64,000 nt of DNA. It comes from Chara braunii (lineage: Eukaryota; Plantae; Charophyceae). Location of the stretch: NCBI GenBank assembly GCA_003427395.1, contig BFEA01000030.1:3350171-3414170 (forward strand), written 5' to 3'. The notes beneath the pieces were generated by a model. The model ran no database searches. It was not told the origin of the DNA and saw only the letters and a list, made by a program, of their open reading frames with translations. This document shows, piece by piece, positions 44,640 to 63,690 of this stretch; within the stretch, counting starts at the first letter, position 1, and every line of letters begins with the position of its first letter. The position numbers and the translations under genes were made by a program.

Positions 44640-47600
44640 ACCAATTTTCCCCCCTTGTGGGCCCCCAAGCCAATCGCGGCTGAATTCTTGAGTGTGCTTC
44701 CTGATTTCACTTGTTGAGTGCAGATGTTGGATTTTTTCTTTAACATTGTCCCATTGTGCTCTGATAACTGTTTGTATTTGTTGTATAATAGAGTCAGTGA
44801 ATTCAGGACCATCTAACCTCACCCCTTCCATCTCATTGGTACATCTCCTCGTCCATATGGCCCAAAGTACCGCTCTTCTTCCGGTTGTGAATAAGTTATG
44901 AGTAAACTCATTGTATGGTTCTGGTTCCCGTGATTCCAGCAATATGGCCCTCCATTCCCAGGGCCACTGGCAACATGTACCTAATGTATCCCAAATCCTG
45001 TCCCACCATCTCCACAACCAAATAACCCCTGGTCATTGTAGGAAGATATGCTCGATTGTTTCAGGGATTATTCTAACCGGGAAAGCAGTCTTACAAAATC
45101 GACACTAGGGAAGAGCTAACCCTTTCTGTTCCAGAGTGGTTCTACTAATCAACCAGTCATTTGTGGGAAGGCAGCGATGTTCTATTTGCCATTGTAATGA
45201 GGCTACTTTGGTTGGTTTACATTTCATCTTTCGGAACCATTTAATTGATCTTAGGATCTCTCTGCTTAGATTCAGCTGCTTTATCCATTTTTCTCCCACC
45301 CTGTCTTTTATGTTTACACTAGGTCTTAACATCCTATATGTCGATTTGACAGACAAGGTGTGAAGCATTCTCTTATATTTGCGACCTCTCCCTCTTGCTG
45401 AGGTCCACACCCAATTCTTGGGATCCAATGCAAGGCACTGGATTGGTATGTTGGGTTTGAAAGCCAACCATGTAGTGTTAAATTTCAGGACTCTGATCCT
45501 GAAAACTTGCTCTCCATCAACCCATCTGGTCTCCTCATCAGGATTAAGAGTGATTGTATGATCCTGTGTTAACCTATATAGGGTCAACAGATAATCACCA
45601 TTGGGGTTGATTTGCAAAATATTCCCAATTAAACTAGATTGGTTTATTATGGATACCCGATCTCCTTCTTCCAGTTTAGGCCCTTTTCTGAGGATCTTAA
45701 TCCAGTCCAATGGGATTAATTCCACAATTTGTTCAAGCGTTGTCGAGCGCATCGGCCCTCGCGCGAAAACGAGGGCCCTCCCGGCCATGTCACGCAGGAG
45801 TTTATCTAAAAACATTATCAAGAGACAACTCGGGAACGACGCATTACGAACCGCCGAGACGGACGCGGTTGCATCGCTCCTTCGCCGCTCTAGCCGGGTA
45901 CGCCAGCTATACATCCCACGCTCCACTACGACAGGATAGGTTTTCGCGGGGCATAAGCTTGCATCCCTAAGGGGCTGTCACCACCCTTAGGGCGTATCCC
46001 TACCGAGCTATTAACCCACGTGCGAAGGCTTTTAAATGCAATCGCAGAGGTAGATCAGCCGAGGGCGTTTGCTCGTCTCGCTGCAGTATAGGAGTCGCTT
46101 GGTTAACGCCAAGTGGACCCAACGCCGTTCGTCCCCCAGAGCGCTGATCTCCGAGGTAGGAAGCGGACGTAAGTCGACTAGGAATGTCTCAACCAAGAGT
46201 GAAACCCTTCATTAATCCTAGTCCCTTAAACATAAAGTCAAACGAAAGTTACGACCACCATACATATAATTATATCTAATGGGATCGATCGTAGCCGACA
46301 CGAATAAATATTCTCAGTATGAAAAGATAACTGAAGAAAAAAAAAATACAAATCATCATTTTATACATCAAATAACACAAGATCAAAAACTATCCGGCCA
46401 CCTCAGGTCGAATACCACAAAACAATCAAAACAACTGCCAACGAAAAGTTGGCTAATCGAAAATAATATTGATGTTGCCAACATGGTAGTCGGACAACCT
46501 CAGTTTTGACTGGATGAGATGCGTTACCAAAGTCATTCATTCCATCCTATCGTCGATCTAAGATTCGACGCGCATACCTGTCTTCGTTCATTTTCAATAT
46601 TTTTGGATGACAAACCGCTTGCACATGATTTTTGATTAGGGGCATTGCTTGACGTGAAGCATGCCTCTTCCTCTAGGAAGCAGTTTGGGGTACTCCTCCT
46701 CGTCCGAGCACAAGACTCGGATCTCAGAAGTCGGACCGTCTCCACCGAATCGGCAAGTACCCCCCCGTAGAACTGTCCACTCTGGATCGCTAACAGGGTC
46801 GGCTCCTGAAGCAACGAACCCCCGTCCCAGATGCTTCCTAGAGATAGCGGATGCGTCCATCGCAAGTAGCTTTGAAATTCACATATATATATATTTTTTC
46901 TCCTAAGTCTTGGGGTAACTTAAACGAAAAAAACTCAGAAGAGATAAAGAAAATGAGAATCATTTAGACAAGTACAGGTAGATAAGGTCGTTCCGGATAG
47001 AATGGGTCAATCCTTGGGAAAAGCTAAATCCGTTTGACCTTATCTGCTTTATTTCAATAAAATTCGTTCTTTGACACACGTTGAATAACATTTTTCCAAA
47101 AGAACGAGTTCTTTTTGACAAGCAGGCAGGTGAAAGGAAGAAAGAAGACAATCCTTTTCCTTTTCTCCAACAAGCGAAGTCAATCTCCATAGCAGGCACC
47201 CTTCTACCTACCTGCACAACATGCAAAAAAAACAAGTTCAAAGGAAAACAGTACAATCCCATACTCGAGTCAGACCACTCCATTCACATGCATGACTCAC
47301 ACAACTTTCTTCTGCCTTTTCTTTTGAACATTCAAATGATAAGGTCAAGCAAAGTGCGGGTTCACACAGGTGTGAAGGGAACTGAATCAGGTTAACTGAC
47401 CTTGAGTGAAGTTTGAACGGTACACTCAAGAAGACCGTATAAACTTTTCGTTCTCCTGACGAGAAGGTTATCGTACCCAGTCGTCACCAAAGTGATCGAC
47501 ACCACTCTCTTGTGATGACTGCCTGCCAGAGCATCCTCTCGGCACTCAATCACTTCCCAATGTTGAGGCAGCGTTACCCTGTTACCGCCACTTGGCTTCA

Positions 47601-47756
47601 AAANACGGCGTCTCCGCGGCGTCACCCTCACGCCACTTCAAAGTAAAACACCGCTTGACGCACCTTCTCTGTGTCAACGTCCCACCTCCACTTTCTGCAA
47701 AAATACTGCAGTTACTAGTGCCGTCGCTGTAAGAATCCGATACTGACGCCGTAAAA

Positions 47757-48188
47757 AAAAATCCGGCAGCGCTTCCGCACTACCGCCGAAAAAGCCAGAA
47801 CCACTGCCACAAAAATCGGGCAGCGCTTCCGCACCACCGCTGAAAAAGCCAGTGCCGCCGCCGCAAAAATTGGGCAGCGCTTCCGCACCACCGCTGAAAA
47901 AGCCAGTGCCGCGGCTGCAAAAATCCGGCAGCGCTTCCGCACCACCGCCGTAAAAGTCCGCGTCGCCGCTGCAGAATTTCAGCAGCACTTCCGTACCGCC
48001 ACAGTAAAAACCCGCGTTGTTGCCGCAGAATTTCGGCAACACTTCCGTATCACCGCCGTAAAAATCCGCGTCGCCGCTGCAGAATTTCGCAACACTTCCG
48101 TACCACCGCAGTCAAAACCCGCATCGCTGCCGCAGAATTTCGGCAGCACTTCCGTACCACCGCTGTAAAAACCGGAGTCGCCGCCGTA
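47757..48188. repeat. 54-bp minisatellite, ~8 units
   Basis: aaaaatccggcagcgcttccgcaccaccgctgaaaaagccagtgccgccgccgc grading into an agaatttcggcagcacttccgt... variant. Confidence 0.9.
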
Positions 48189-49064
48189 GTCCTGCAGCGT
48201 CCTTGGTTCCGTCCCGTTGGACCAGTGTCAGCTGAAAGGGAGGGAAGCAGAGTGCTCCCTGCCTTGGCTATGGCTGCCCAGTTCTCCTCCTTGCGCTCCT
48301 CTGCAGATCTCCAGCCTCCTCCAGCAGCAGTCCTCCAGCTCCCTCAGCTTGCGCCCCAACAAATGAGGCAAGTGTGTTGCCGCATACTGGCAGCTGGAGG
48401 CAAGTGTGAGGCAGCTGAGGGGCAGCTGCCTTTTTTATAGTGGCTAAGGAGGGCAGCAGCAGCCTCAGCTGCCCCTAGGCAAAATTCGTCACTTGCCTGG
48501 GGCCCTTGATCTGAGCACGATCAAGGGTCTGAGGTCGTCGCACCTCAGCCACACACTTAGGGAGGCAGTTGTACTCAACTGCCTCTTTCATTTTTCCTTC
48601 TTTTCCCTGCACTCATCTCTTTTCTGAGTACAGGTACATCAACAAAGAAGTTGCACGAAGTCACTTTCCCCCTCTGACCCTTTAGTTCAAATTTCTGGCC
48701 TGAATGACTCCATTCAGGCCAGTTGTTCCTGAATGTGGTGCATGGCCGCGGCCACGTTCGCGGCCGTGACTGTTCTTTTCCCTCCCCTTGTCTTCTTTTC
48801 CTTTTTTCCCCTGCCCTCCCCTCAAAACGGGGATGACAGTTGTCAGATTGGGAGAGGTAGGGCCTCCTTCTCCCGTCCCCTCCCGTTTCTCTCTCCCTCT
48901 CTGCTGCCCCTCAGTCCCACTCCCAACGCGCACGTTGTGGGCCGCGAGATCTAGGCCACGAATATTCGTGCCAGACGAGACTGGGAGCTCATCCTGCTCC
49001 CACACAGTTGAAAAGACTGTGTTTCTAACTGTGAGGCACAAAGGCCTCGTTTTTGTTTTGTTTT

Positions 49065-49127
<63 letters not shown>

Positions 49128-49410
49128 GTTTTTAGTTTTTGTTTTCACCCTTCTCGTTTTTCCCTGTTAGTCGTGTTCCAACGGTTGCGAACGGGGAGGG
49201 AGAAGACAAAAAAAACTCAAGAGAAGAAAAAAGAAAGAAAAAAAAAAAAAAAAAAAAAAACTTACCTGTAATGATGACTGGCGACCGTAGCAACAGCAGT
49301 GGCCTTGGCCACTGCCTGCGGGCTGTATTCTCCCGCGTTCTGGAGGGAGATTCATTCGATTTTGCTCATCCTATTCGTGGAAGTACCACAGGGCCAACCA
49401 CCAGGTGGGT

Positions 49411-49444
<34 letters not shown>

Positions 49445-49484
49445 CACCCGTATCTAGGTGCGTTCAGCGCCACATTTAGGCGCA

Positions 49485-49553
49485 GTGCAGTTCGTCGAGA
49501 TCCAACCTCCTGATGAGTCGGTGAAACCCGACGAAACAATCTGTGAGCTGCAC
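49485..49553 (+). ncRNA. Type III hammerhead ribozyme
   Basis: GUC (49494-49496), stem I gag/ctc, CUGAUGA (49510-49516), stem II gtcgg/ccgac, GAAAC (49533-49537), stem III gtgcagttc/gagctgcac beyond a 7-nt bulge. Confidence 0.8.
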
Positions 49554-49785
49554 GAACGGACGTTTATAGGAAAAGAAACTAAAAAGAAGAATAAAACAAA
49601 AAAACTAAGAGAAAATCTAAAAAACAGAGAATCTAAAAAAAATCTAAGAACAAAAAAAACAAAAAAAACAACTAACCTCCATAGGCAAAACGGGTGCTCG
49701 TTTTCAACGGGCGCCTTCTGGATCCTTTGGGGACTGTAAGTCCCCAACTTCTTCATACAGCGCCATCTTGCGCGTTCGTGGATCA

Positions 49786-49823
49786 CCACGAACTGTTGAG
49801 ATACAGACCCGAGTTCGATTCCC
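49786..49823 (+). repeat. tRNA-like module (same family as 18048-18085 and 56011-56072)
   Basis: gaactgttgagatacagacccgagttcgattccc with B-box. Confidence 0.7.
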
Positions 49824-49835
49824 TGCGGGGAATCG

Positions 49836-49895
49836 AAAAAAAATTCGAACCATTTCTCGAATTATGCGTGTTATCCTTGCGCAGGGGCCATGCTA
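49836..49895 (-). pseudogene. U6: U6 snRNA 3' half including the oligo-U end
   Basis: Reverse complement tagcatggcccctgcgcaaggataacacgcataattcgagaaatggttcgaatttttttt. Confidence 0.92.
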
Positions 49896-52800
49896 CCATC
49901 GCGCGGCTGATCTCAGCCGCGAGATCTTACGATCGGACGACCGAGATCGGCCGCGCTTGGATACATTGGGCTGCTCCAAAAAGGAGCAAGCACCAGTGGA
50001 TACGTTTCTTCATACTCGATCCCAGTATCAGTCAAGTAGTAATCTGCTGTCATAACCCACTGGGCTAGCTCTTATCACAACAGTGATAAAAGCTGCTCTT
50101 CTATATGAAGAGCTGCCCAGTCACTTCTGCCCCCATGCCGTAGCTTCGCAAGCTCTGTCTGCCTGCGGCCCTACAGGCACTACTTACCTGTGGTCGTGCA
50201 GACCCGCTTGCGGTCCTGCGGCCTTGCTCGCGGCTGTGCTGCCCTGCGCGCAGCTCTGTAGCTTTGTGTAGGGCCCTGTTGCTGGCGAGCCAATCTGTCG
50301 TTAAGACGACAACTGTCTGATGGCACGGCACACATGCCACAGCCACAACCACTTATTGCACCTGCTAAACCCTAAATCGCGCGGCCTACGGTCGCGCACT
50401 ATCTTTTAAGGTAGAATAATCTAACTCAAATTCTAGACGTCTGCATGCTTTTGCGGCTTCAGCGAAATTAAAATATCGTTATTTCCGGACATGAGACGCG
50501 TCCGGACCAAAGTCTAAAATTTTAACTTCTCAGTCATAGGTCTGGTCTGAATAAACTTTTGGTAAACGTCAGTCTCATCAAGTCCTTTAATCCAACGAAA
50601 GAGTCGGACAACATCCGACGTTTAAAATTCGACAGCGCTTCCTTTGAATGATGGCAATAACGTAGCTGCCCTTGTAATTCATCCACTGATATCCAGTCTT
50701 TATGATCCACATTCCAAATGTCTTTAATTCGCATGACACCCCTCTTAATCCAACTTTTCTATGGTGAATCCATATAATTGAGAACATATCCTTGTGAATT
50801 CCTGATCCTACCATTATTGAAAAAGGGTTGTCGGTACACTTCTTCCCATCTATCAGAAGCTACTTTATCTGGCAGGGGAAGTTCTCTCCAGGTTTTTAAC
50901 AAGGTAGGCTAAAACGGGTCTTTATTCAAATCCTTTCGAGCTGCACTATGATCTGAGATAACTCGATCTTCTACTTCATTTGATGCTTTCCTGGGAATAG
51001 TCCATGATGTATTTTCTAACCATATCATAGGATCTATATTATCAGGGGCTTCTGGAGCTAGTCGTCTAATTTGTTCCCATGCCAATTCTTTCCATGGAGT
51101 CTGAGGATTAAATAGTAATCTCTTAATCCACTGGATAGACAACGTCATTCCTTGTGTTCCCGGGTCAATAATTCCCAGCCCCCTTTTGACCTTTGGCTGT
51201 ATCACTGATTGCCAGGCCATTCTAATGATGACGTTTTGATATTCATGATTTCCACGCTAAAGAAAAACTACCGCCTGTCTTTGTAGAGACTTTGTCGCTG
51301 TTTTATCCATTGGCCATATTGTTGATTTGTACCAAGAAGAAGTCAACACTACATTGTTAATGATGATTGCTCGTCCCATTACTGAGGTATGCTTATTTTT
51401 TCATAATTCTAGCTTTGTTTGTGCTGGTTGAGTAATTCATTCATTATTCGTAAGTGGCTTTCCTTCTGCAGTGAGTGATATACCCAGCACTCTAACTGGA
51501 GTGTCTAATGAGACCCATTTCACTCTAGGCTGCTCAGGAGGTCGTACTCCCTGATAGTGGATCCACCATCCTAAGGTCTTATTACCCCAGTTGACCCTCA
51601 TATCAGAAAGGCGATAAAAGTTATTCATCATTCTCTGTACAACTGTCAGATTTTCATGTTATGCTTCTATCATGAGAGATAAATCATCAGCAAATAGGGA
51701 ACATACTGGTATAGCTTCTTCAGGTATAGATGTGACTTGGATGCGTTTGATGTCCTTATGTTTCCTTAGATTAGCTGCTAACGCTTCCATTATAATGATA
51801 AACAGGAAAGGCGCGATCGGATCTCCTTGCCTGACTGATCTTTGTAATGAGATAGGTGGAGCGACATTACCATTGATCGTTACTCTAGTAGTGGCATTAT
51901 GGTGCAGAATATCAATCAATCTCCTGAAAATATGACCAAACTCAAGCTTTTCAAGACACTTGTCCAAGAAATACAAATCCACATGATCATATGTTTTCTC
52001 AAAAAATCTATAAAAAGAATAACCGCATTATGTTTAGATTGGTGAGATAATTTAATCATTTCATTAATTAATAAGACGTTGTCCCGAATATTCCTCTCAT
52101 TTATGAACCCAGTTTGAGCTGGGTGGATAATATTCATTATGACTTTATTTAATCTGTTTGCTAGGGCTTTCGCTATTAACTTATAAACGACTGTGAGTAG
52201 GGTGATCGGGCGGTAATTGCGAATATTAGATTTACTTCTTTTTTTATACAATAAAGTTAGTACTCCTTGACCAACTATTTCCCCCATTTCACCCGTTCTC
52301 CATACTGTTTGGTAGAAATCCATTAGGTCGTGAGAAAAAAAATCCCAACTAGATTTCCAGAATTCCTTTGGGAAACCATCAATACCTGGTGTTTTCTCGT
52401 CTTCCATTAACATTAAGGCTGTCCAGATTTCGTCGTTAGAAAGAGGCAATTTAAGCATCTTCTGTTGTTCCTTTGTCATATTCTTAGTTAGTGGTGATAG
52501 GAAGTCCTCAATTTCCTCATTGCGTTGATGTCTTGGAATATCTCCAGTTCCTGATTGAAATAATTAAAAAAAAAAATATCTCGCTATCTTAGTACATGCT
52601 GCCGAGGATGTAACCATCTCACCATCATTACTTTGTGGGTCAGTTAATGCTTCTATCACTGTTCTTCCAGTCCTTATTCTAGTCATTGCAAAGAAACGAG
52701 CATCCATTGATCCTTTCGTATAATGTTTTCTGAGTTTTCCTATGATCTTATTCCCTTGCCAACGGTACTCAATGTGGCTTAATAGTTCCTTTTCTAGCTT

Positions 52801-54851
52801 AGTGATCTCTGATGCTAGGGTTTTCATGACTTCTGCATCTTCTTACTTAGTTTCCTGATGCTGTAATTCTTGAATTTGCTGTAGGATGTATATTTCCTTA
52901 GAATGACGTTCTACTGCTAATGCTTTTGAATACTCATTAATATTTACGACTTAAAAACATTAGGCCGTTGTTGAACCATTTAACATTATCATTTATCATT
53001 TCCTTTTGTTCCTTCCAGAATTTTCAAACGTCCTTAAGATAGTTTCTAAAATTGTCAATTTTAAGATGAGAAGTGTTGAGTTTGTAGAACCCTTTCCCCT
53101 GATCCGTTTTTTCCTAAACGAGAATATAGCCACACTCATCGCATGATCAAGACCTAGAAAGGGGGAGCGAGGAAAAATTCCCGCCACCTGTAATGCTCCT
53201 TGCATCTCTTTTGATACTAATATTAGATCAATACGAGACTTAGTGTTCTGACCTGCTCTCCCTTTCCTAAAACACGAGAATGTCTTTTGTGTTGGATTAA
53301 TCCTCCAATAGGAGTCAAATGACTTCATTCATTGGCATAGATTAGATATAATCAACTAATCTGACTCTATATAGTCAGGGCATGGGGAAGGGAGTCTCTA
53401 TCTATCTTGATAACGGTTAGGTGCTGCGTTGAAATCCCCAGCTATAATCACTGGGATACCAACAGGTAGCTGAGGGAGGGAAGAAGTGAAGAATCTTTGA
53501 CGATTGCCAACCTCATTGGGTGCATAAATACATAATATACTAACAACCTCTATTTCAAGCATCGCCAGAATGTTTACCCATCTACCTTCCACTTTATCAC
53601 CTTCCCAATTTATCACCTTCACTTTGGAGTCTGGAGGGATCCATATAGCCACCCCTGCGCTCCCTGGTCTGNAAAGCTCAGGAAAGCACACAGCGTCTAC
53701 GAGCTGCCGCTCTGGTCAAACTGGTCATACGTTCCTCGGCGCCCAGACAATGAGCTAAGCTTCAAATCCAGCAAGAACTTATGGTTGTTCTTGTCAAGGT
53801 TCCAATACCCAAAAGGCTTGACTGGCTGCCTCCACTGCTCCTTAGTTTTCTCACACTTGTCTTTCATCTCATATATGTGCTCACGGAATTTCTTGTCGCG
53901 CTCCTCTGGGTCCTCCATCCCTTGCCTAATTAAGGCCTCTGCGAACTCCAGGATGAAAGACATTCCGCCGTCCGTCCGCTCAAATAGCACCCCCTGTGCG
54001 ATTCGGTGTTGCACGCAGCTTACAACAGGATAGACTGTGGCAAACCACAAACAAAGCAGGCTCCTTCTGGAAGCAGAGCAAACAAAACTTTTTCCTTTCT
54101 GGGGTGAGTGTGAATAGCACTCCACATCATCAGGCAGAACACCGCAGGCACTGACATACGGCGTGGCCGCGGGCTCGCAGCCCATTGTCGAGTGGAGTGA
54201 CGAAACGCCGGCAGCAGAGTAGAGCCCTCGAAGTACGTAATGGCCACCTACCTATCTGTGCTAAGAATCATCATCGTCAAACCCCAACAGGCAATCTACA
54301 AACACGCCACCAACGAAACCCTGAACAATCCTCCTCCCGCCGGAGGGGCGACCCTCCCCCTTCTTGATTGAGCTTGCAGGTAACGTGGCATACGTGGCAT
54401 GAAAAAAATGGAATTTTCTTTTTTTTCTTTTCTTTTTCCCCCCTTCTGCACGGGGATTGGTCCTGCCAGTTCGAGGATTGGCCCTGGGGCTCAAGGGCAA
54501 CGTTTTCAAGCATAGGTTCTTGGGACTGCGGAGCGAAAAAACGAGTTAGGGAAAATTAATCACCTTCCCGGAGTTAGGGTGCCCTTGAAACTCAAGTATT
54601 TTCAACTGGTGTCGAACAAGGCCCTCTTTCCTCCTCTCATTTTTCTACCTACTTTTCTCCTCTTTTCCTCTTTTCTCCTTACTTTTCTCCTTTTTTTTCT
54701 CTTTTTTGGAGTTTGTTTCCTTTTCTTGTTCCACTCTCTGACACAAGTGCCAACAATTAGGAGTAGTGGTAGGTAGGTAGTGTGAGGTGAAATTGAGAGA
54801 AGAACATAGCTTTTTTTTTTTTTAAGTGGTTTTAAATAAAAGAAAAAAAAA

Positions 54852-58475: not shown

Positions 58476-61400
58476 TGGGTGGGCGTAACTTGTTCCAAGC
58501 ATAAAGAATCTGACGCCAAAGCATCAACTTCGCCCAACGCTGAGTAAAGGAAGGAAGACACAAGTACAACCAAATATCTTCATGATGTACTAACTTTCAG
58601 TCTGTACTGCTAAGACAAACCAAAAGGTAGAAAACGCAACAACCGATACGACTATGACCCATCCCAACAAGGAAAAGAACTGGCCTTTCTCCCATGTTCC
58701 TATCTTCTCTATCACTTGATTTCCCGGTAAGTTATCTTGTGTCTGTGCACAATTACTCATAGAGACTTGAACTCCGAGAAACCTTCCAGATGCAGTAGGC
58801 GGGAGAGTCTTCATACCCCAATCCCCTTTGAAGGTAAAGGTCTCAGACGAAGTACAATAGTCATCCAAGACAGGTCGCAGTTACTCGTTGCTTCCGTCGT
58901 GCTCTCGCAGGGGACCATGAGGTCGTCTGAGATGGCATCCCCTTTCCAATGGAAAAAATGAGTCACTCTCGACCTTTTATCTGTTCATTGTGCCTAATAT
59001 TGTCCAACAAAACATCAAGTTGAAGCACAAATAGGAAAGGGGCTAGAGGGCAGCCTTGACGAAGAGGGCGGTATAAGTCAAAGGGACGGGATAAGAGGCC
59101 ATCCACGTTGACTTTCGGTGAGGCCGGGGAGTACATTGCTTTGACAAATTTACAAAAGACTGGCCAAAACCCATGCACGGTAGAGTTGTGGCTACAAATG
59201 CCCAACCTAATTTATCGTAGGCCTTCTCCAAGTCCAAGAGTAGTATGGCTACTTTTTTTCTGAGCCTATCACTTCAAGAGTCTGGATTGTCGCCAATATA
59301 TTTTCAAAAATTGATCTCCCCTTTACAAAAACTCCCTCTTGTGGACCCATCACGTATGGCAAGTACCGTGGCAGTTTTTTTTTTTTTTTTTTTTTTTTTT
59401 AACACGCCCCCACCAGTGTTAGTGGTGTTGATAAGAGCATACACCACTAGCACCTGGGGAGAGGCTCCATGTATTGGTGGGGAGCATCACCTGCTGGAAA
59501 ACGGGTTCAGCGTCCCATATACAGTGTCTGTCTAAAATCAAAGCATATCGGAGAAAAATGCGGGATATTCCTGCCAGCATTGACTACCCCGGGATCCAGG
59601 GGATTAATTGAGTAGGATATTGGAATGGGGGGAGGGAACCTCTTCACCCTGGACCTGGCACCGGATACCTGTTGCTACACACCGATTCCTCCCTCCCCCT
59701 ATCTTTTTTTAGCTACATCTTTATCGATATTGCAGTCCTTTTTACAATTGTTGTGGCCGGCAGGGGGAACATATCAGGAAATTCCCCTGGACTCTTCATC
59801 GAAATGTCGGGATTGACTTGAAGCCATTCATGGAACTCGAGATTGCAGTCCTCGGCGAATTCAATGTCTCCCTTTTTGTTCTCACTTTCCTTCGGACAGA
59901 CGATGTATGCCAACCTGCCTCCCTTTTCCCCTCCCAACCAGTTTGCGCAGAAGATACTGATTTATTTTGTAATGTCTGCTTTCTGTGTCAAGTGTTTCAT
60001 CTTTTCCTGTGTTTTTTTCCATCGCACTCTTATTTTAGTTTCTATAAGCTGTCTAACCATTTCTGTCACGTATCCTTTCCCCATCATGGCCCCTTCCTGA
60101 TCAAACACACATCTTCAGAATCTTATCCATAACGCCCATATCACTGTCTTCCTGGCGGTGACGAACAGATTGTTGGAGAAGTTGGAAGTTGGCAGCCTTC
60201 CCTATATTCCTAGTAGGATTGTTTCCCATGTCCAAGGCCACTCCTCCTCAGTACCCAGTAATGCCACATTAGTATCGCCCCTGGGCACTGGAGGAAGATG
60301 TGTTCACATACTTTGCGACTCGGGAATCCTGCATAGCTGAGTTTACACCATGGGAGAGCCTCCCCTTTTTGTTCCAGATTGGTTCTGTCAATGATCCAAT
60401 TGTTGGTGGGAAGGCATCTATAGAATATCTACCACTTCAGGGCAACAAATTTGGCCGGTCTCTCCTTTACTCCTTTAAACTACTTTATTCCTTTTATCTG
60501 ATCATCGTCCAGGTTTAGGTGTCTCTTCCATCTCTCCCTTACCACTGTCTGCACATCTACCTTGGATCTAATCATTATGTAAGTATTCTTATCGTTAGCC
60601 TAGTGAGCTTGACTTTTTGCCCTGTCCGACCTCTCTCCTATTGCCATTCCAGCGGATCCATGGCTAAACTGGACAGGGGTACTTCTGGGCGATAGACCTG
60701 CTATTCTATCTTACCTCCCTTGTGTATTTGCAGCACCCGTATCCGATTGAGGTTGGCTTTCTCGTGCCACTGGACATAGTTTAGGCGGTACCTTACCAGG
60801 GTGTCATCCCTTTTCCTTTCAAATATATTCACCATAGCTCCTTCAGTTCTCACCTCTACCACACACCCTATTTGTAGGGGGAACCCCTCTGCCGCAATTG
60901 TCACCCAATCCTGTTCCTATAAGGACTGTCCTTTTTTCATGATCACCACCCAGGCTAAGGGAATGAAGAATATTAGTTGTTCCATCCTGTCTGCTAAATT
61001 GCAGGCATGTCGTAGACAGGGTATTATTTATTGGATTGTTTTCCGATCTTCAATTGCCTCATCCCATATATCCCTAACTAGAAGAATCCCGTTTCCAACT
61101 CATGCAACCCACTGAAGGTCCGAGCTACAAAAAGTCCGGCCTTGTCTATCTATGATGACTTTATTCCCAAACAGGGGCTGGTGCATAACTTCTTCCATCC
61201 ATTCTGGGGGGGGGGTATCTGTGATCGGCAGCCTTCTCCAATTCTTGATGAGGTTGGCCCAGAATTGGTCCTTAGCAAGATCTTGTCTTGCTGCTCCTCG
61301 ATCTCCTTCCTCTCGTGAGTGTGAATTGGCTTGTGGGATGGACCAATGCCGGTCCTCAATCCAGGTCAACGGGTCTACTCTCAGGGCGTCTCTTGGGGCC

Positions 61401-63690
61401 AGCCTACGGATCTGTTCCCTGACCAGATTCCACCGAGGAGGGGTTATACCCAAGATTAGTTTCTTAACCCATTGGATTGACAGTGTTGTAGCATGCAGAG
61501 AGGGATCCAACAACCCCATTCCCCCTTTCCTCTTAGGCTAAATCAATGTATCCCAAGCCACTCAGTTTATCACGTATTGCTGGTCCGAGTCCCCTCTCCA
61601 GAGGAAGGGCGCGAGTTGCTTTTTGAGGGATTTTGTACTATTCTTACCAAGTTGTCAGAGGGCCAACTTATACCAGATAGCTCCCAACGCCTCGTTATTA
61701 ATAATTAGCACCCTCCCAAAAATTAAAGTGTTTCTGTTTTTCCACTTTTGCATTTTCTCTAGAGATGTTTTCGTGAGTCATTCATCATTCCCTTTTGGTA
61801 GTCCCTGCGTTGATAGTTCTACCCCCAGCACGTGAATCGGGTCCTCTAGAGGTCTCCAGTCCACTTTTGGTTGTTTCGGGGACGAACCCCGTAGTAATGG
61901 ATCCACCAACCCTGCGTCTTGCCACCCCAATTGACGGTCATATCTGACACCCGAGTGAAATGCGGCATCAGGGCTTGGATTTCTGCCATATTGCTTTGGG
62001 TGGCTTCTGTTACTATTGTCAAGTCATCGACAAACATCGAGTAAATGGGTATGGCATCTTCAGGGATGCCCGTCATACGAAGTCTAGAAATTTTCTTGTT
62101 TGTTCTCAAATTGGCCCCTAAAGCTCCATTACTATGATGAAAAGGAAGGGGGCTATGAGATCTCCTTGCCGCACAGAGCGTTGCAATCTGAGTTCTTGTA
62201 CAAGCAAGTCAGTCACATGTAGTCGCGTTATTGCGTTGTGGTGAAGGATTCCTTTCCAGTCCCGAAATTGATGGTTAGGGCTTTAGCAAGGATCTTATAA
62301 GCTACGTTTAATACGGAGATGAGTCGCTAGTTGCGAATTTTTGTTTTAGGTCTCTTCTTATATAACAAGGAAATAATGTCTACCGAGAGACCCATGGGGA
62401 GACTTCGTTCCAGGGACGCTACGTTATAGATCCCAGACAAGAGAGGGGCCATGACCTCCCAAGTGGCTGAATACAACTCTACTGAGAGGCCATCAATCCC
62501 TGAACACGTGCCAGTTGACATAATCCTGACAGCTTGGAGTAAATCCTCTTTGGTGAACAGTCTGTCCAGGTCTAATCTGAGTCCGGTCCCAAAAGGTAAA
62601 GGATAAAGACAGATAGAGTCAAAAGAGTCCGCAAGGCGGACTGTTGTTAAAATGTCTGAGAAGTATTCCACAACGTAGTCACACATAGAGGTACTGGTAA
62701 GTGTTGGTGGCATGTCAAAGGAGAACGAGCGATAAAGTTCTCTTAGTAGTGGTTTGGTGCCCTAAGAGAACAAAAGGTAATTTAGTCATGCGATCTTGAC
62801 CTTTCAGGCCCCGCACCTTTAGCCATTCCAGCCACTGTTTCTAACGTTGCGTTTCTTGCACCTCCAGCTGGACTAGTAGAGGTCCCTGTATGGGTCCTGA
62901 TCCAATTTGGATTCTGCATCTCGGATGGTTTGTTTTCTGCTTTCGCTAACCCGCCTTAGTCTGGGAGAAGACATCTAATGCCGAATGCAATATAGCAAAG
63001 CCAATATCCACCCAATCATCGTAGTTGGAGAGGCCCCTTCGCTCCCTCCCATTTCAATACCTGATCTTTATCCCAGTTGATGATGCCCACATCTTTTAAA
63101 TGAGACACATTTAGTCTGAAAGTCCTTTGAAATTTCCTCACTTGGTCCCTGGACAAAACGTAGTTTGACCATAGGCAACGCTCCCAAAGGACCCCACAAA
63201 CAAACAACATATCCAACCTCCGGCCAAGAGGCGGGGTATGCTCATCAGGCACTGCTCCAAACCACGAAAACCCAAAAGTATCCGGGTTGAGGACACGAAA
63301 GATGTATACTAGGAAGTGGGCAACCATTAGTTCGAGCAAAGTCGTAGTGTCTGCGCGGATCGGGTTCAGTCGGGGTGAGTCCAGACCCAGAGTTAGGGTC
63401 GTGTTCCAGTCCCCGACAACCAGTAAGTGCTCTGTGTCTGGGAGAAAGGCCGGGAGATCGGCAAAAAAATTACAGTGGACTAGGAAATTGACTGGCGCGT
63501 AGACGGACATAATACCCCAATCCTCATTTCCCACAACGATGTTTACCCATACAAAACGGCCCGAAGTGTCCACAAAGTTGTCGAAAATTTCCACGTTCAG
63601 ATACTTGTGAAAAATCATCGTCATCCCCCCTTTCGAATCACCCACCGGGGCCAAAAACTGTGGGTCCGGCCACCATCTCACACAGTCTGC
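58476..63690 (-). mobile_element. Older L1-like LINE (APE + RT) interrupted by 59375-62270
   Basis: APE SVYAP, VGDWN, RRLD (63016-63681); RT YKILAKALTI (~62271) continues as LPRYLP..FVKGRSIFEN, DLEKAYD, LRQGCPLAP left of 59374. Confidence 0.85.
59375..62270 (-). mobile_element. 5'-truncated LINE nested in another LINE
   Basis: RT VRQGDL, FVDD; similar to 50635-51980; ends in the structured tail and poly(A) at 59375-59516. Confidence 0.85.

Follow-up and report, generated by a model that had tools for sequence, protein, structure and literature searches.

The window, a 64-kb stretch of the Chara braunii genome, contains in retroposon-rich surroundings a solitary, non-coding copy of the type III hammerhead ribozyme. 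Here it is proposed, with somewhat better than even confidence, that this lone and weakened copy descends by retroposition, as a relic, from the retroelements of Chara that carry hammerheads. A ribozyme-carrying RNA, derived from the Penelope-like Chlamys-2 or PLE-X elements or from their non-autonomous derivatives, would have been reverse-transcribed and inserted beside a (CT)n tract, leaving an A-rich tail at its end. The core stays intact, stem I is reduced to 3 contiguous pairs, and stem III is broken by 7 nt after its second pair; a transcript of this copy would mostly fold as a competing hairpin, 17 pairs long, that hides the cleavage site, and self-cleavage after C49496 would be slow or absent in the monomer. 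Neither relatives nor the context of this lone copy point to a function, and no sign of a host function was seen at the locus.

The sequence at 49485-49553 (+) reads as a type III hammerhead in which every core nucleotide is canonical. In hammerhead numbering, these are C3-A9, G12-A14, A15.1-U16.1, C15.2-G16.2, C17, G10.1-C11.1, and G1.1-C2.1, with C17 occupying position H17, which must not be G. Three helices surround this core, I and II closed by loops and III open. As a first-pass annotation of this DNA had described, GUC, CUGAUGA, and GAAAC follow each other in order, the GUC at 49494-49496 predicts a cut after C49496, and stem I has 3 bp. These 3 bp can also be read as closed by a 7-nt loop. 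Stem III has 5 of 7 pairs in the Rfam register and takes, in an alternative register, the form given by that annotation, with 2 bp, a 7-nt bulge, and 9 bp (Table 1).

The Rfam type III hammerhead model, RF00008, aligns to 49489-49542 over model positions 1-54/54 without indels and scores 42.5 bits, with an E-value of 4.7e-8 in a local search of 451 nt and of 6.7e-6 for the whole 64-kb window, both strands, and 4227 families. The covariance-model search proposed in the annotation thus returned a significant match, although one that lies 6 bits under the gathering score of RF00008 (48.5 bits), and an Rfam scan at the gathering threshold gives no hit. Stems I and III account for this shortfall, and the Rfam alignment shows their mismatches. 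For the strict pattern CTGATGAG-N(8-36)-CGAAAC, the window has a single match, compared with an expectation of 0.01 from shuffles. The covariance-model search found no second hammerhead in the window at E up to 5; the flanks of the ribozyme are not repeated in the window, and no direct or inverted repeats, pseudo-LTR, or tandem arrangement bracket it, in agreement with the earlier remarks that a single copy is visible and that it does not lie in paired LTRs. The sequence at 49485-49553 is a genuine hammerhead-derived type III ribozyme sequence, below the curated threshold.

Table 1. Parts of the hammerhead domain and features in its surroundings (positions in the window).
Feature	Position	Strand	Evidence
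Second A-rich tract	49203..49261		sequence
(CT)14 microsatellite, abutting the structured domain on its 5' side	49414..49441	+	sequence
Flanking CGUUC (49461-65), pairing with GAACG (49554-58) and enclosing the hairpin GCGCC-ACAUUUA-GGCGC (49467-83)	49461..49483	+	folds
Whole hammerhead domain, type III topology	49485..49553	+	sequence; RF00008 match 49489-49542
Stem III, outer part, 5' strand; pairs with 49545-49553, 9 bp including one G.U	49485..49493	+	in MFE and constrained hammerhead fold
GUC triplet (G16.2, U16.1, C17), predicted cleavage after 49496	49494..49496	+	sequence; Rfam alignment
Stem-loop I: GAG/CUC 3 bp, A49500.C49506 mismatch, U49501-A49505, loop CCA	49497..49509	+	mismatch marked in Rfam alignment
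Conserved core CUGAUGA (C3-A9)	49510..49516	+	sequence; Rfam alignment; pattern
Stem-loop II: GUCGG/CCGAC 5 bp, 6-nt loop UGAAAC; close to RF00008 consensus	49517..49532	+	sequence; alignment; fold
Conserved GAAAC (G12, A13, A14, A15.1, C15.2)	49533..49537	+	sequence; Rfam alignment
7-nt bulge AAUCUGU, 3' strand of stem III	49538..49544	+	MFE structures
Stem III, outer part, 3' strand	49545..49553	+	sequence; folds
A-rich tract directly downstream, possible retroposon tail; repeat family D4	49570..49672	+	sequence; repeat analysis
Truncated U6 snRNA, 3' half, 45.7 bits	49839-49896	- (antisense to ribozyme)	Rfam
Decayed 5'-truncated LINE, APE then RT remnants	~53691 to ~50534	-	domain search

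The folding of the copy was analyzed with nearest-neighbour energies, which leave out two drivers of real hammerheads, tertiary contacts and co-transcriptional folding. The hammerhead fold has -17.0 kcal/mol versus -22.4 kcal/mol for the MFE structure, a gap of 5.4 kcal/mol, and in this energy model, without tertiary contacts or co-transcriptional folding, the hammerhead pairs have an ensemble probability of about 3e-5. The MFE structure is a long competing hairpin in which the bulge at 49538-49544 pairs with the GUC and the stem I strand (49494-49501); the outer helix 49485-49493/49545-49553 is present both in this structure and in the constrained hammerhead fold, and stem I by itself is not stable. 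The claim in the annotation of three closable stems holds for the type III topology and is qualified by the covariance-model score below the cut-off, the instability of stem I alone, and an active fold that the energies strongly disfavour against the hairpin formed with the bulge.

As controls, metagenome contigs supplied 18 distinct hammerheads of type III that match in core and stem II pattern; these were treated identically. All of them (18/18) have a stem I of 4-5 bp, and the hammerhead is the MFE structure in 13, with a median probability near 0.45 and one outlier at 5e-6; the window ribozyme has a probability of 1.5e-4 under the control set-up. Rescoring of three control loci with Rfam (5 matches) gave 53-56 bits, compared with 42.5 for the window ribozyme. 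When the 7-nt bulge is deleted in silico, stem III becomes a continuous helix of 11 bp and the hammerhead becomes the MFE structure (P 0.69); repair of the A.C mismatch alone brings no gain (P 1e-4). The copy thus resembles an ordinary type III ribozyme whose stem I is damaged and whose stem III carries 7 additional nucleotides. Efficient cleavage in vivo needs loop-loop contacts between helices I and II (PMC5680766, PMC6155905); the 3-bp stem I leaves little room for contacts between loop I and loop II. Self-cleavage of the 49485-49553 RNA as a monomer is predicted, from the energy model, to be weak or absent. At a larger scale, the 111-nt domain at 49455-49565 is more structured than shuffles (z = -3.4), and the larger unit at 49262-49565 is not clearly so (z = -1.9).

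Neither relatives nor covariation of the ribozyme were found in the metagenome, prokaryotic-genome, and viral collections. No matches were obtained in the metagenome contigs with a pattern allowing 0-12 nt between GAG and CUC, in the prokaryotic genome contigs with an exact 28-mer, or in the viral contigs with the short-stem-I pattern. The general pattern of core plus stem II matched 4 viral and 39 metagenome loci, all of them unrelated, ordinary hammerheads, which were used solely as controls. Word searches with the spurious ORFs that span the ribozyme on both strands retrieved no protein, and an exact look-up of four window ORFs retrieved nothing.

The main rival reading, which we regard as unlikely, is that of an active ribozyme with a conformational switch, the bulge being a deliberate alternative partner of the cleavage-site strand. 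By analogy with viroid and satellite hammerheads, cleavage would occur co-transcriptionally and the stable hairpin would form afterwards, in the RNA of a live low-copy element or in a host transcript. The intact core, the perfect stem II, and the 9-bp outer helix are consistent with a working ribozyme, as is the structure of the 111-nt domain above that of shuffles (z = -3.4), but stem I is too short for the usual contacts between loops I and II (PMC5680766, PMC6155905). The pairing of the bulge with 49494-49501 in the MFE structure also speaks for a switch, but it consists of only 4 contiguous plus 2 pairs, attainable by chance, and the reading is further opposed by the lack of relatives or covariation in the collections searched, of a second copy, and of coding or genic context on the + strand. 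Still less probable is a conformationally gated type III hammerhead in which the 7 nt after C15.2 are no damage and have been selected as an off-switch through their pairing with the cleavage-site strand. If true, this streptophyte alga would have a domesticated ribozyme or a low-copy element of a kind not described so far. For the retroposed relic, the intact core together with the perfect 5-bp stem II and the 9-bp outer helix is more than expected of an old, freely decaying copy; the argument from the intact core is weakened by ascertainment, since intact cores are what gets flagged.

The unusual shortness of stem I also suits a dimer-type hammerhead, in which a short, loop-less, palindromic stem I works only as a stem-I-swapped dimer, and without the 7-nt loop the strands of stem I would read GAGCUC, a palindrome. 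As it stands, however, stem-loop I (49497-49509) is not self-complementary, and it thus lacks the feature that defines the dimer type. An intermolecular duplex yields the same 3 + 1 pairs as the hairpin, and the two-molecule cofold has an MFE of -48.6 kcal/mol versus -44.8 kcal/mol for two monomers, with no double-hammerhead arrangement. A hammerhead of this dimer type is held to be quite improbable.

The surroundings of the ribozyme are retroposon debris, consisting of LINE remnants, a truncated U6, A-rich tracts, a T75 homopolymer, and (CT)14. The T75 tract (49050-49124) faces the A-rich tract at 49203-49261 at a distance of 79 nt, as a potential long hairpin or as back-to-back retroposon tails. 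No coding sequence was found around the ribozyme, and a coding exon is ruled out by the six frames, all of which are interrupted or of low complexity. The 4.8 kb upstream of the ribozyme contain no RT or GIY-YIG ORF on its strand, and Pfam returned nothing for the + strand ORFs in 44692-48954; the RT and APE domains nearby are of LINE type and lie on the strand opposite the ribozyme. A second copy of the decayed LINE, with about 45% amino-acid identity, lies at ~61118-63681 (-). An ORF at 53700-54185 (-) with an NDUFB11 domain is 96% identical over 99% of its length to CBR_g8533, a hypothetical protein of Chara braunii, a match that assigns the window to this species; this NDUFB11-domain ORF (53697-54185, -) has the decayed LINE within a few bases downstream of it on the minus strand.

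A tRNA-like module near the ribozyme was ruled out with ARAGORN, which found no tRNA-like gene there. The sequence that we take to be the tRNA-Met PBS motif has a single exact match in the window, at 30282 inside a Ty3/Gypsy element, and no exact match within 4 kb of the ribozyme. Some possible boundaries of an inserted unit were also considered and rejected. These include a terminal inverted repeat at 49442-51/49690-99, a 10-bp perfect match of which about 0.45 are estimated to occur by chance in the region, and a 17-nt inverted match at 49488-504/49779-95, which is marginal and incompatible with the former; a TSD-like AACCTCC repeat is at chance level. Downstream of the truncated U6, 49834-49792 (-) is 74% similar to 18037-18079, the stretch just upstream of a full-length U6 (18069-18181, +) and overlapping its start; this similarity suggests that 49792-49896 is a fragment of a tandem or U6-derived repeat unit.

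Two types of Chlamys Penelope-like elements in C. braunii had been reported to bear canonical hammerheads (Craig et al. 2021, PMC8557442), Chlamys-2_cBra, in which the hammerhead is 3', and PLE-X, which lacks the endonuclease. Both are distributed genome-wide, with a bias for inserting in microsatellites (PMC8557442). The window ribozyme, likened to them by description only, shares with these elements the species, the retroelement setting, and the adjoining microsatellite, and differs from them in having no RT/endonuclease ORF, pseudo-LTR, or tandem arrangement and in that the microsatellite is (CT)n. A Penelope-like element in place was rejected, as there is no same-strand RT ORF in the 4.8 kb upstream and no pseudo-LTR, tandem, or inverted arrangement. 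Alternatively, a Chlamys-2 or PLE-X copy may itself have left the ribozyme here as its 3' end after 5' truncation, in which case there would be no separate non-coding retroposon. This alternative is given little credence. The canonical 3' hammerhead of Chlamys-2_cBra and the frequent truncation of PLE copies and their location in microsatellites (PMC8557442) argue for it, as does the (CT)14 abutting the structured domain, but the reports for Chlamys concern (CA)n and (C)n microsatellites and not (CT)n, no PLE coding remnant lies upstream, and the A-rich tail is more typical of LINE-type retroposition. The retroposed-relic reading has points against it too, namely that no relative was found in the collections searched, that no same-strand RT/GIY-YIG ORF lies within 4.8 kb, and that there is no tandem or pseudo-LTR arrangement. 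That the core motifs arose by chance in an ordinary inverted repeat, which would agree with the score under the Rfam gathering cut-off and with an MFE structure that is a plain hairpin, is already very unlikely given the E-value of 6.7e-6 after correction for the window and 4227 families (about 4e-5 when rescaled to one family over the C. braunii genome, which we take to be ~1.75 Gb), the gap-free alignment of 54/54 model positions, and a stem II and loop close to the consensus.

As in the type III hammerheads of RF00008, known from viroids, satellite RNAs, and plant genomes, the window ribozyme has the same core, GUC triplet, G10.1-C11.1 pair, and topology, with stem II and its loop near the consensus; it differs in the 3 contiguous pairs of stem I (4-5 in the controls) and in the 7-nt bulge of stem III. 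The active fold is the MFE structure in 13 of the 18 controls, but not in the window ribozyme. In plant LTR retrozymes, the type III hammerheads lie in paired LTRs (Cervera et al. 2016, PMC4918200), and the trait in common is a type III hammerhead in a non-coding streptophyte element; the window ribozyme, however, is one ribozyme with no direct LTRs and no PBS near it, and an LTR retrozyme was rejected for the lack of both around it. Like the non-LTR retrozymes, such as the type I retrozymes of animals (PMC7229834), the window ribozyme is a short non-coding hammerhead unit next to a microsatellite, probably mobilised in trans; it differs in being lone and not tandem and in having a (CT)n microsatellite and an A-rich tail. 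Solitary genomic motifs of Arabidopsis thaliana have been called canonical type III hammerheads (Przybilski et al. 2005, as cited in PMC6155905). As far as that citation describes them, they share with the window ribozyme the isolated, canonical-core type III motif in a nuclear genome of the green lineage; the window ribozyme differs in its weakened stems I and III and is known here from its sequence alone.

A single copy matters little in itself, as it adds one hammerhead to a genome whose Penelope-like elements were already known to have them. It is also an example of how a perfect core can go with a compromised structure, a caution for ribozyme calls based on the motif only. Recurrence of the short stem I and the bulged stem III across Chara copies would define a type III design, gated or atypical, in an early-diverging streptophyte, and such a recurrent design, if true, would bear on the relation of the plant retrozyme and viroid-type hammerheads to the Penelope-like elements.

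Other parts of the window also contain repeats and structured elements. The full-length U6 snRNA at 18069-18181 (+), with 79.8 bits, lies between inverted repeats of about 100 bp (17669-17769/18434-18534) that are 87% identical, and upstream of it there is a T-rich tract and 3.2 copies of a 36-bp tandem repeat (17933-18049); the whole, 17669-18534, resembles a foldback or TIR-type unit with a U6 as its cargo. The Ty3/Gypsy LTR retrotransposon spans 29965-40270, with LTRs at 29965-30246 and 40006-40270 (86% identical), the exact tRNA-Met PBS motif at 30282-30293, and RT, RNase H, and integrase ORFs at 35400-37516. A near-perfect palindrome of 334 bp at 15345-15672, 92% self-complementary, gives spurious miRNA-model matches on both strands. 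Additionally, a tandem array at 47757-48186 consists of 8 copies of a 54-bp unit, with a 108-bp higher-order period and about 82% matches.

The metagenome contigs include a group of hammerhead-bearing units of their own. Contigs L027, L023, L018, L029, and L040 and about 15 similar ones, of ~2.0-2.2 kb, have one type III hammerhead each; those of L020, L023, and L027, rescanned with Rfam, score 53-56 bits. The two that were checked, L027 (1-2143) and L023 (1-4209), are terminally redundant, with units of 2028 nt and 2011 nt, respectively, and L023 has 3 mismatches over its 1299-nt overlap. The longest stop-free stretch has only 116-154 aa. These contigs look like ~2-kb non-coding circular or tandem hammerhead replicons.
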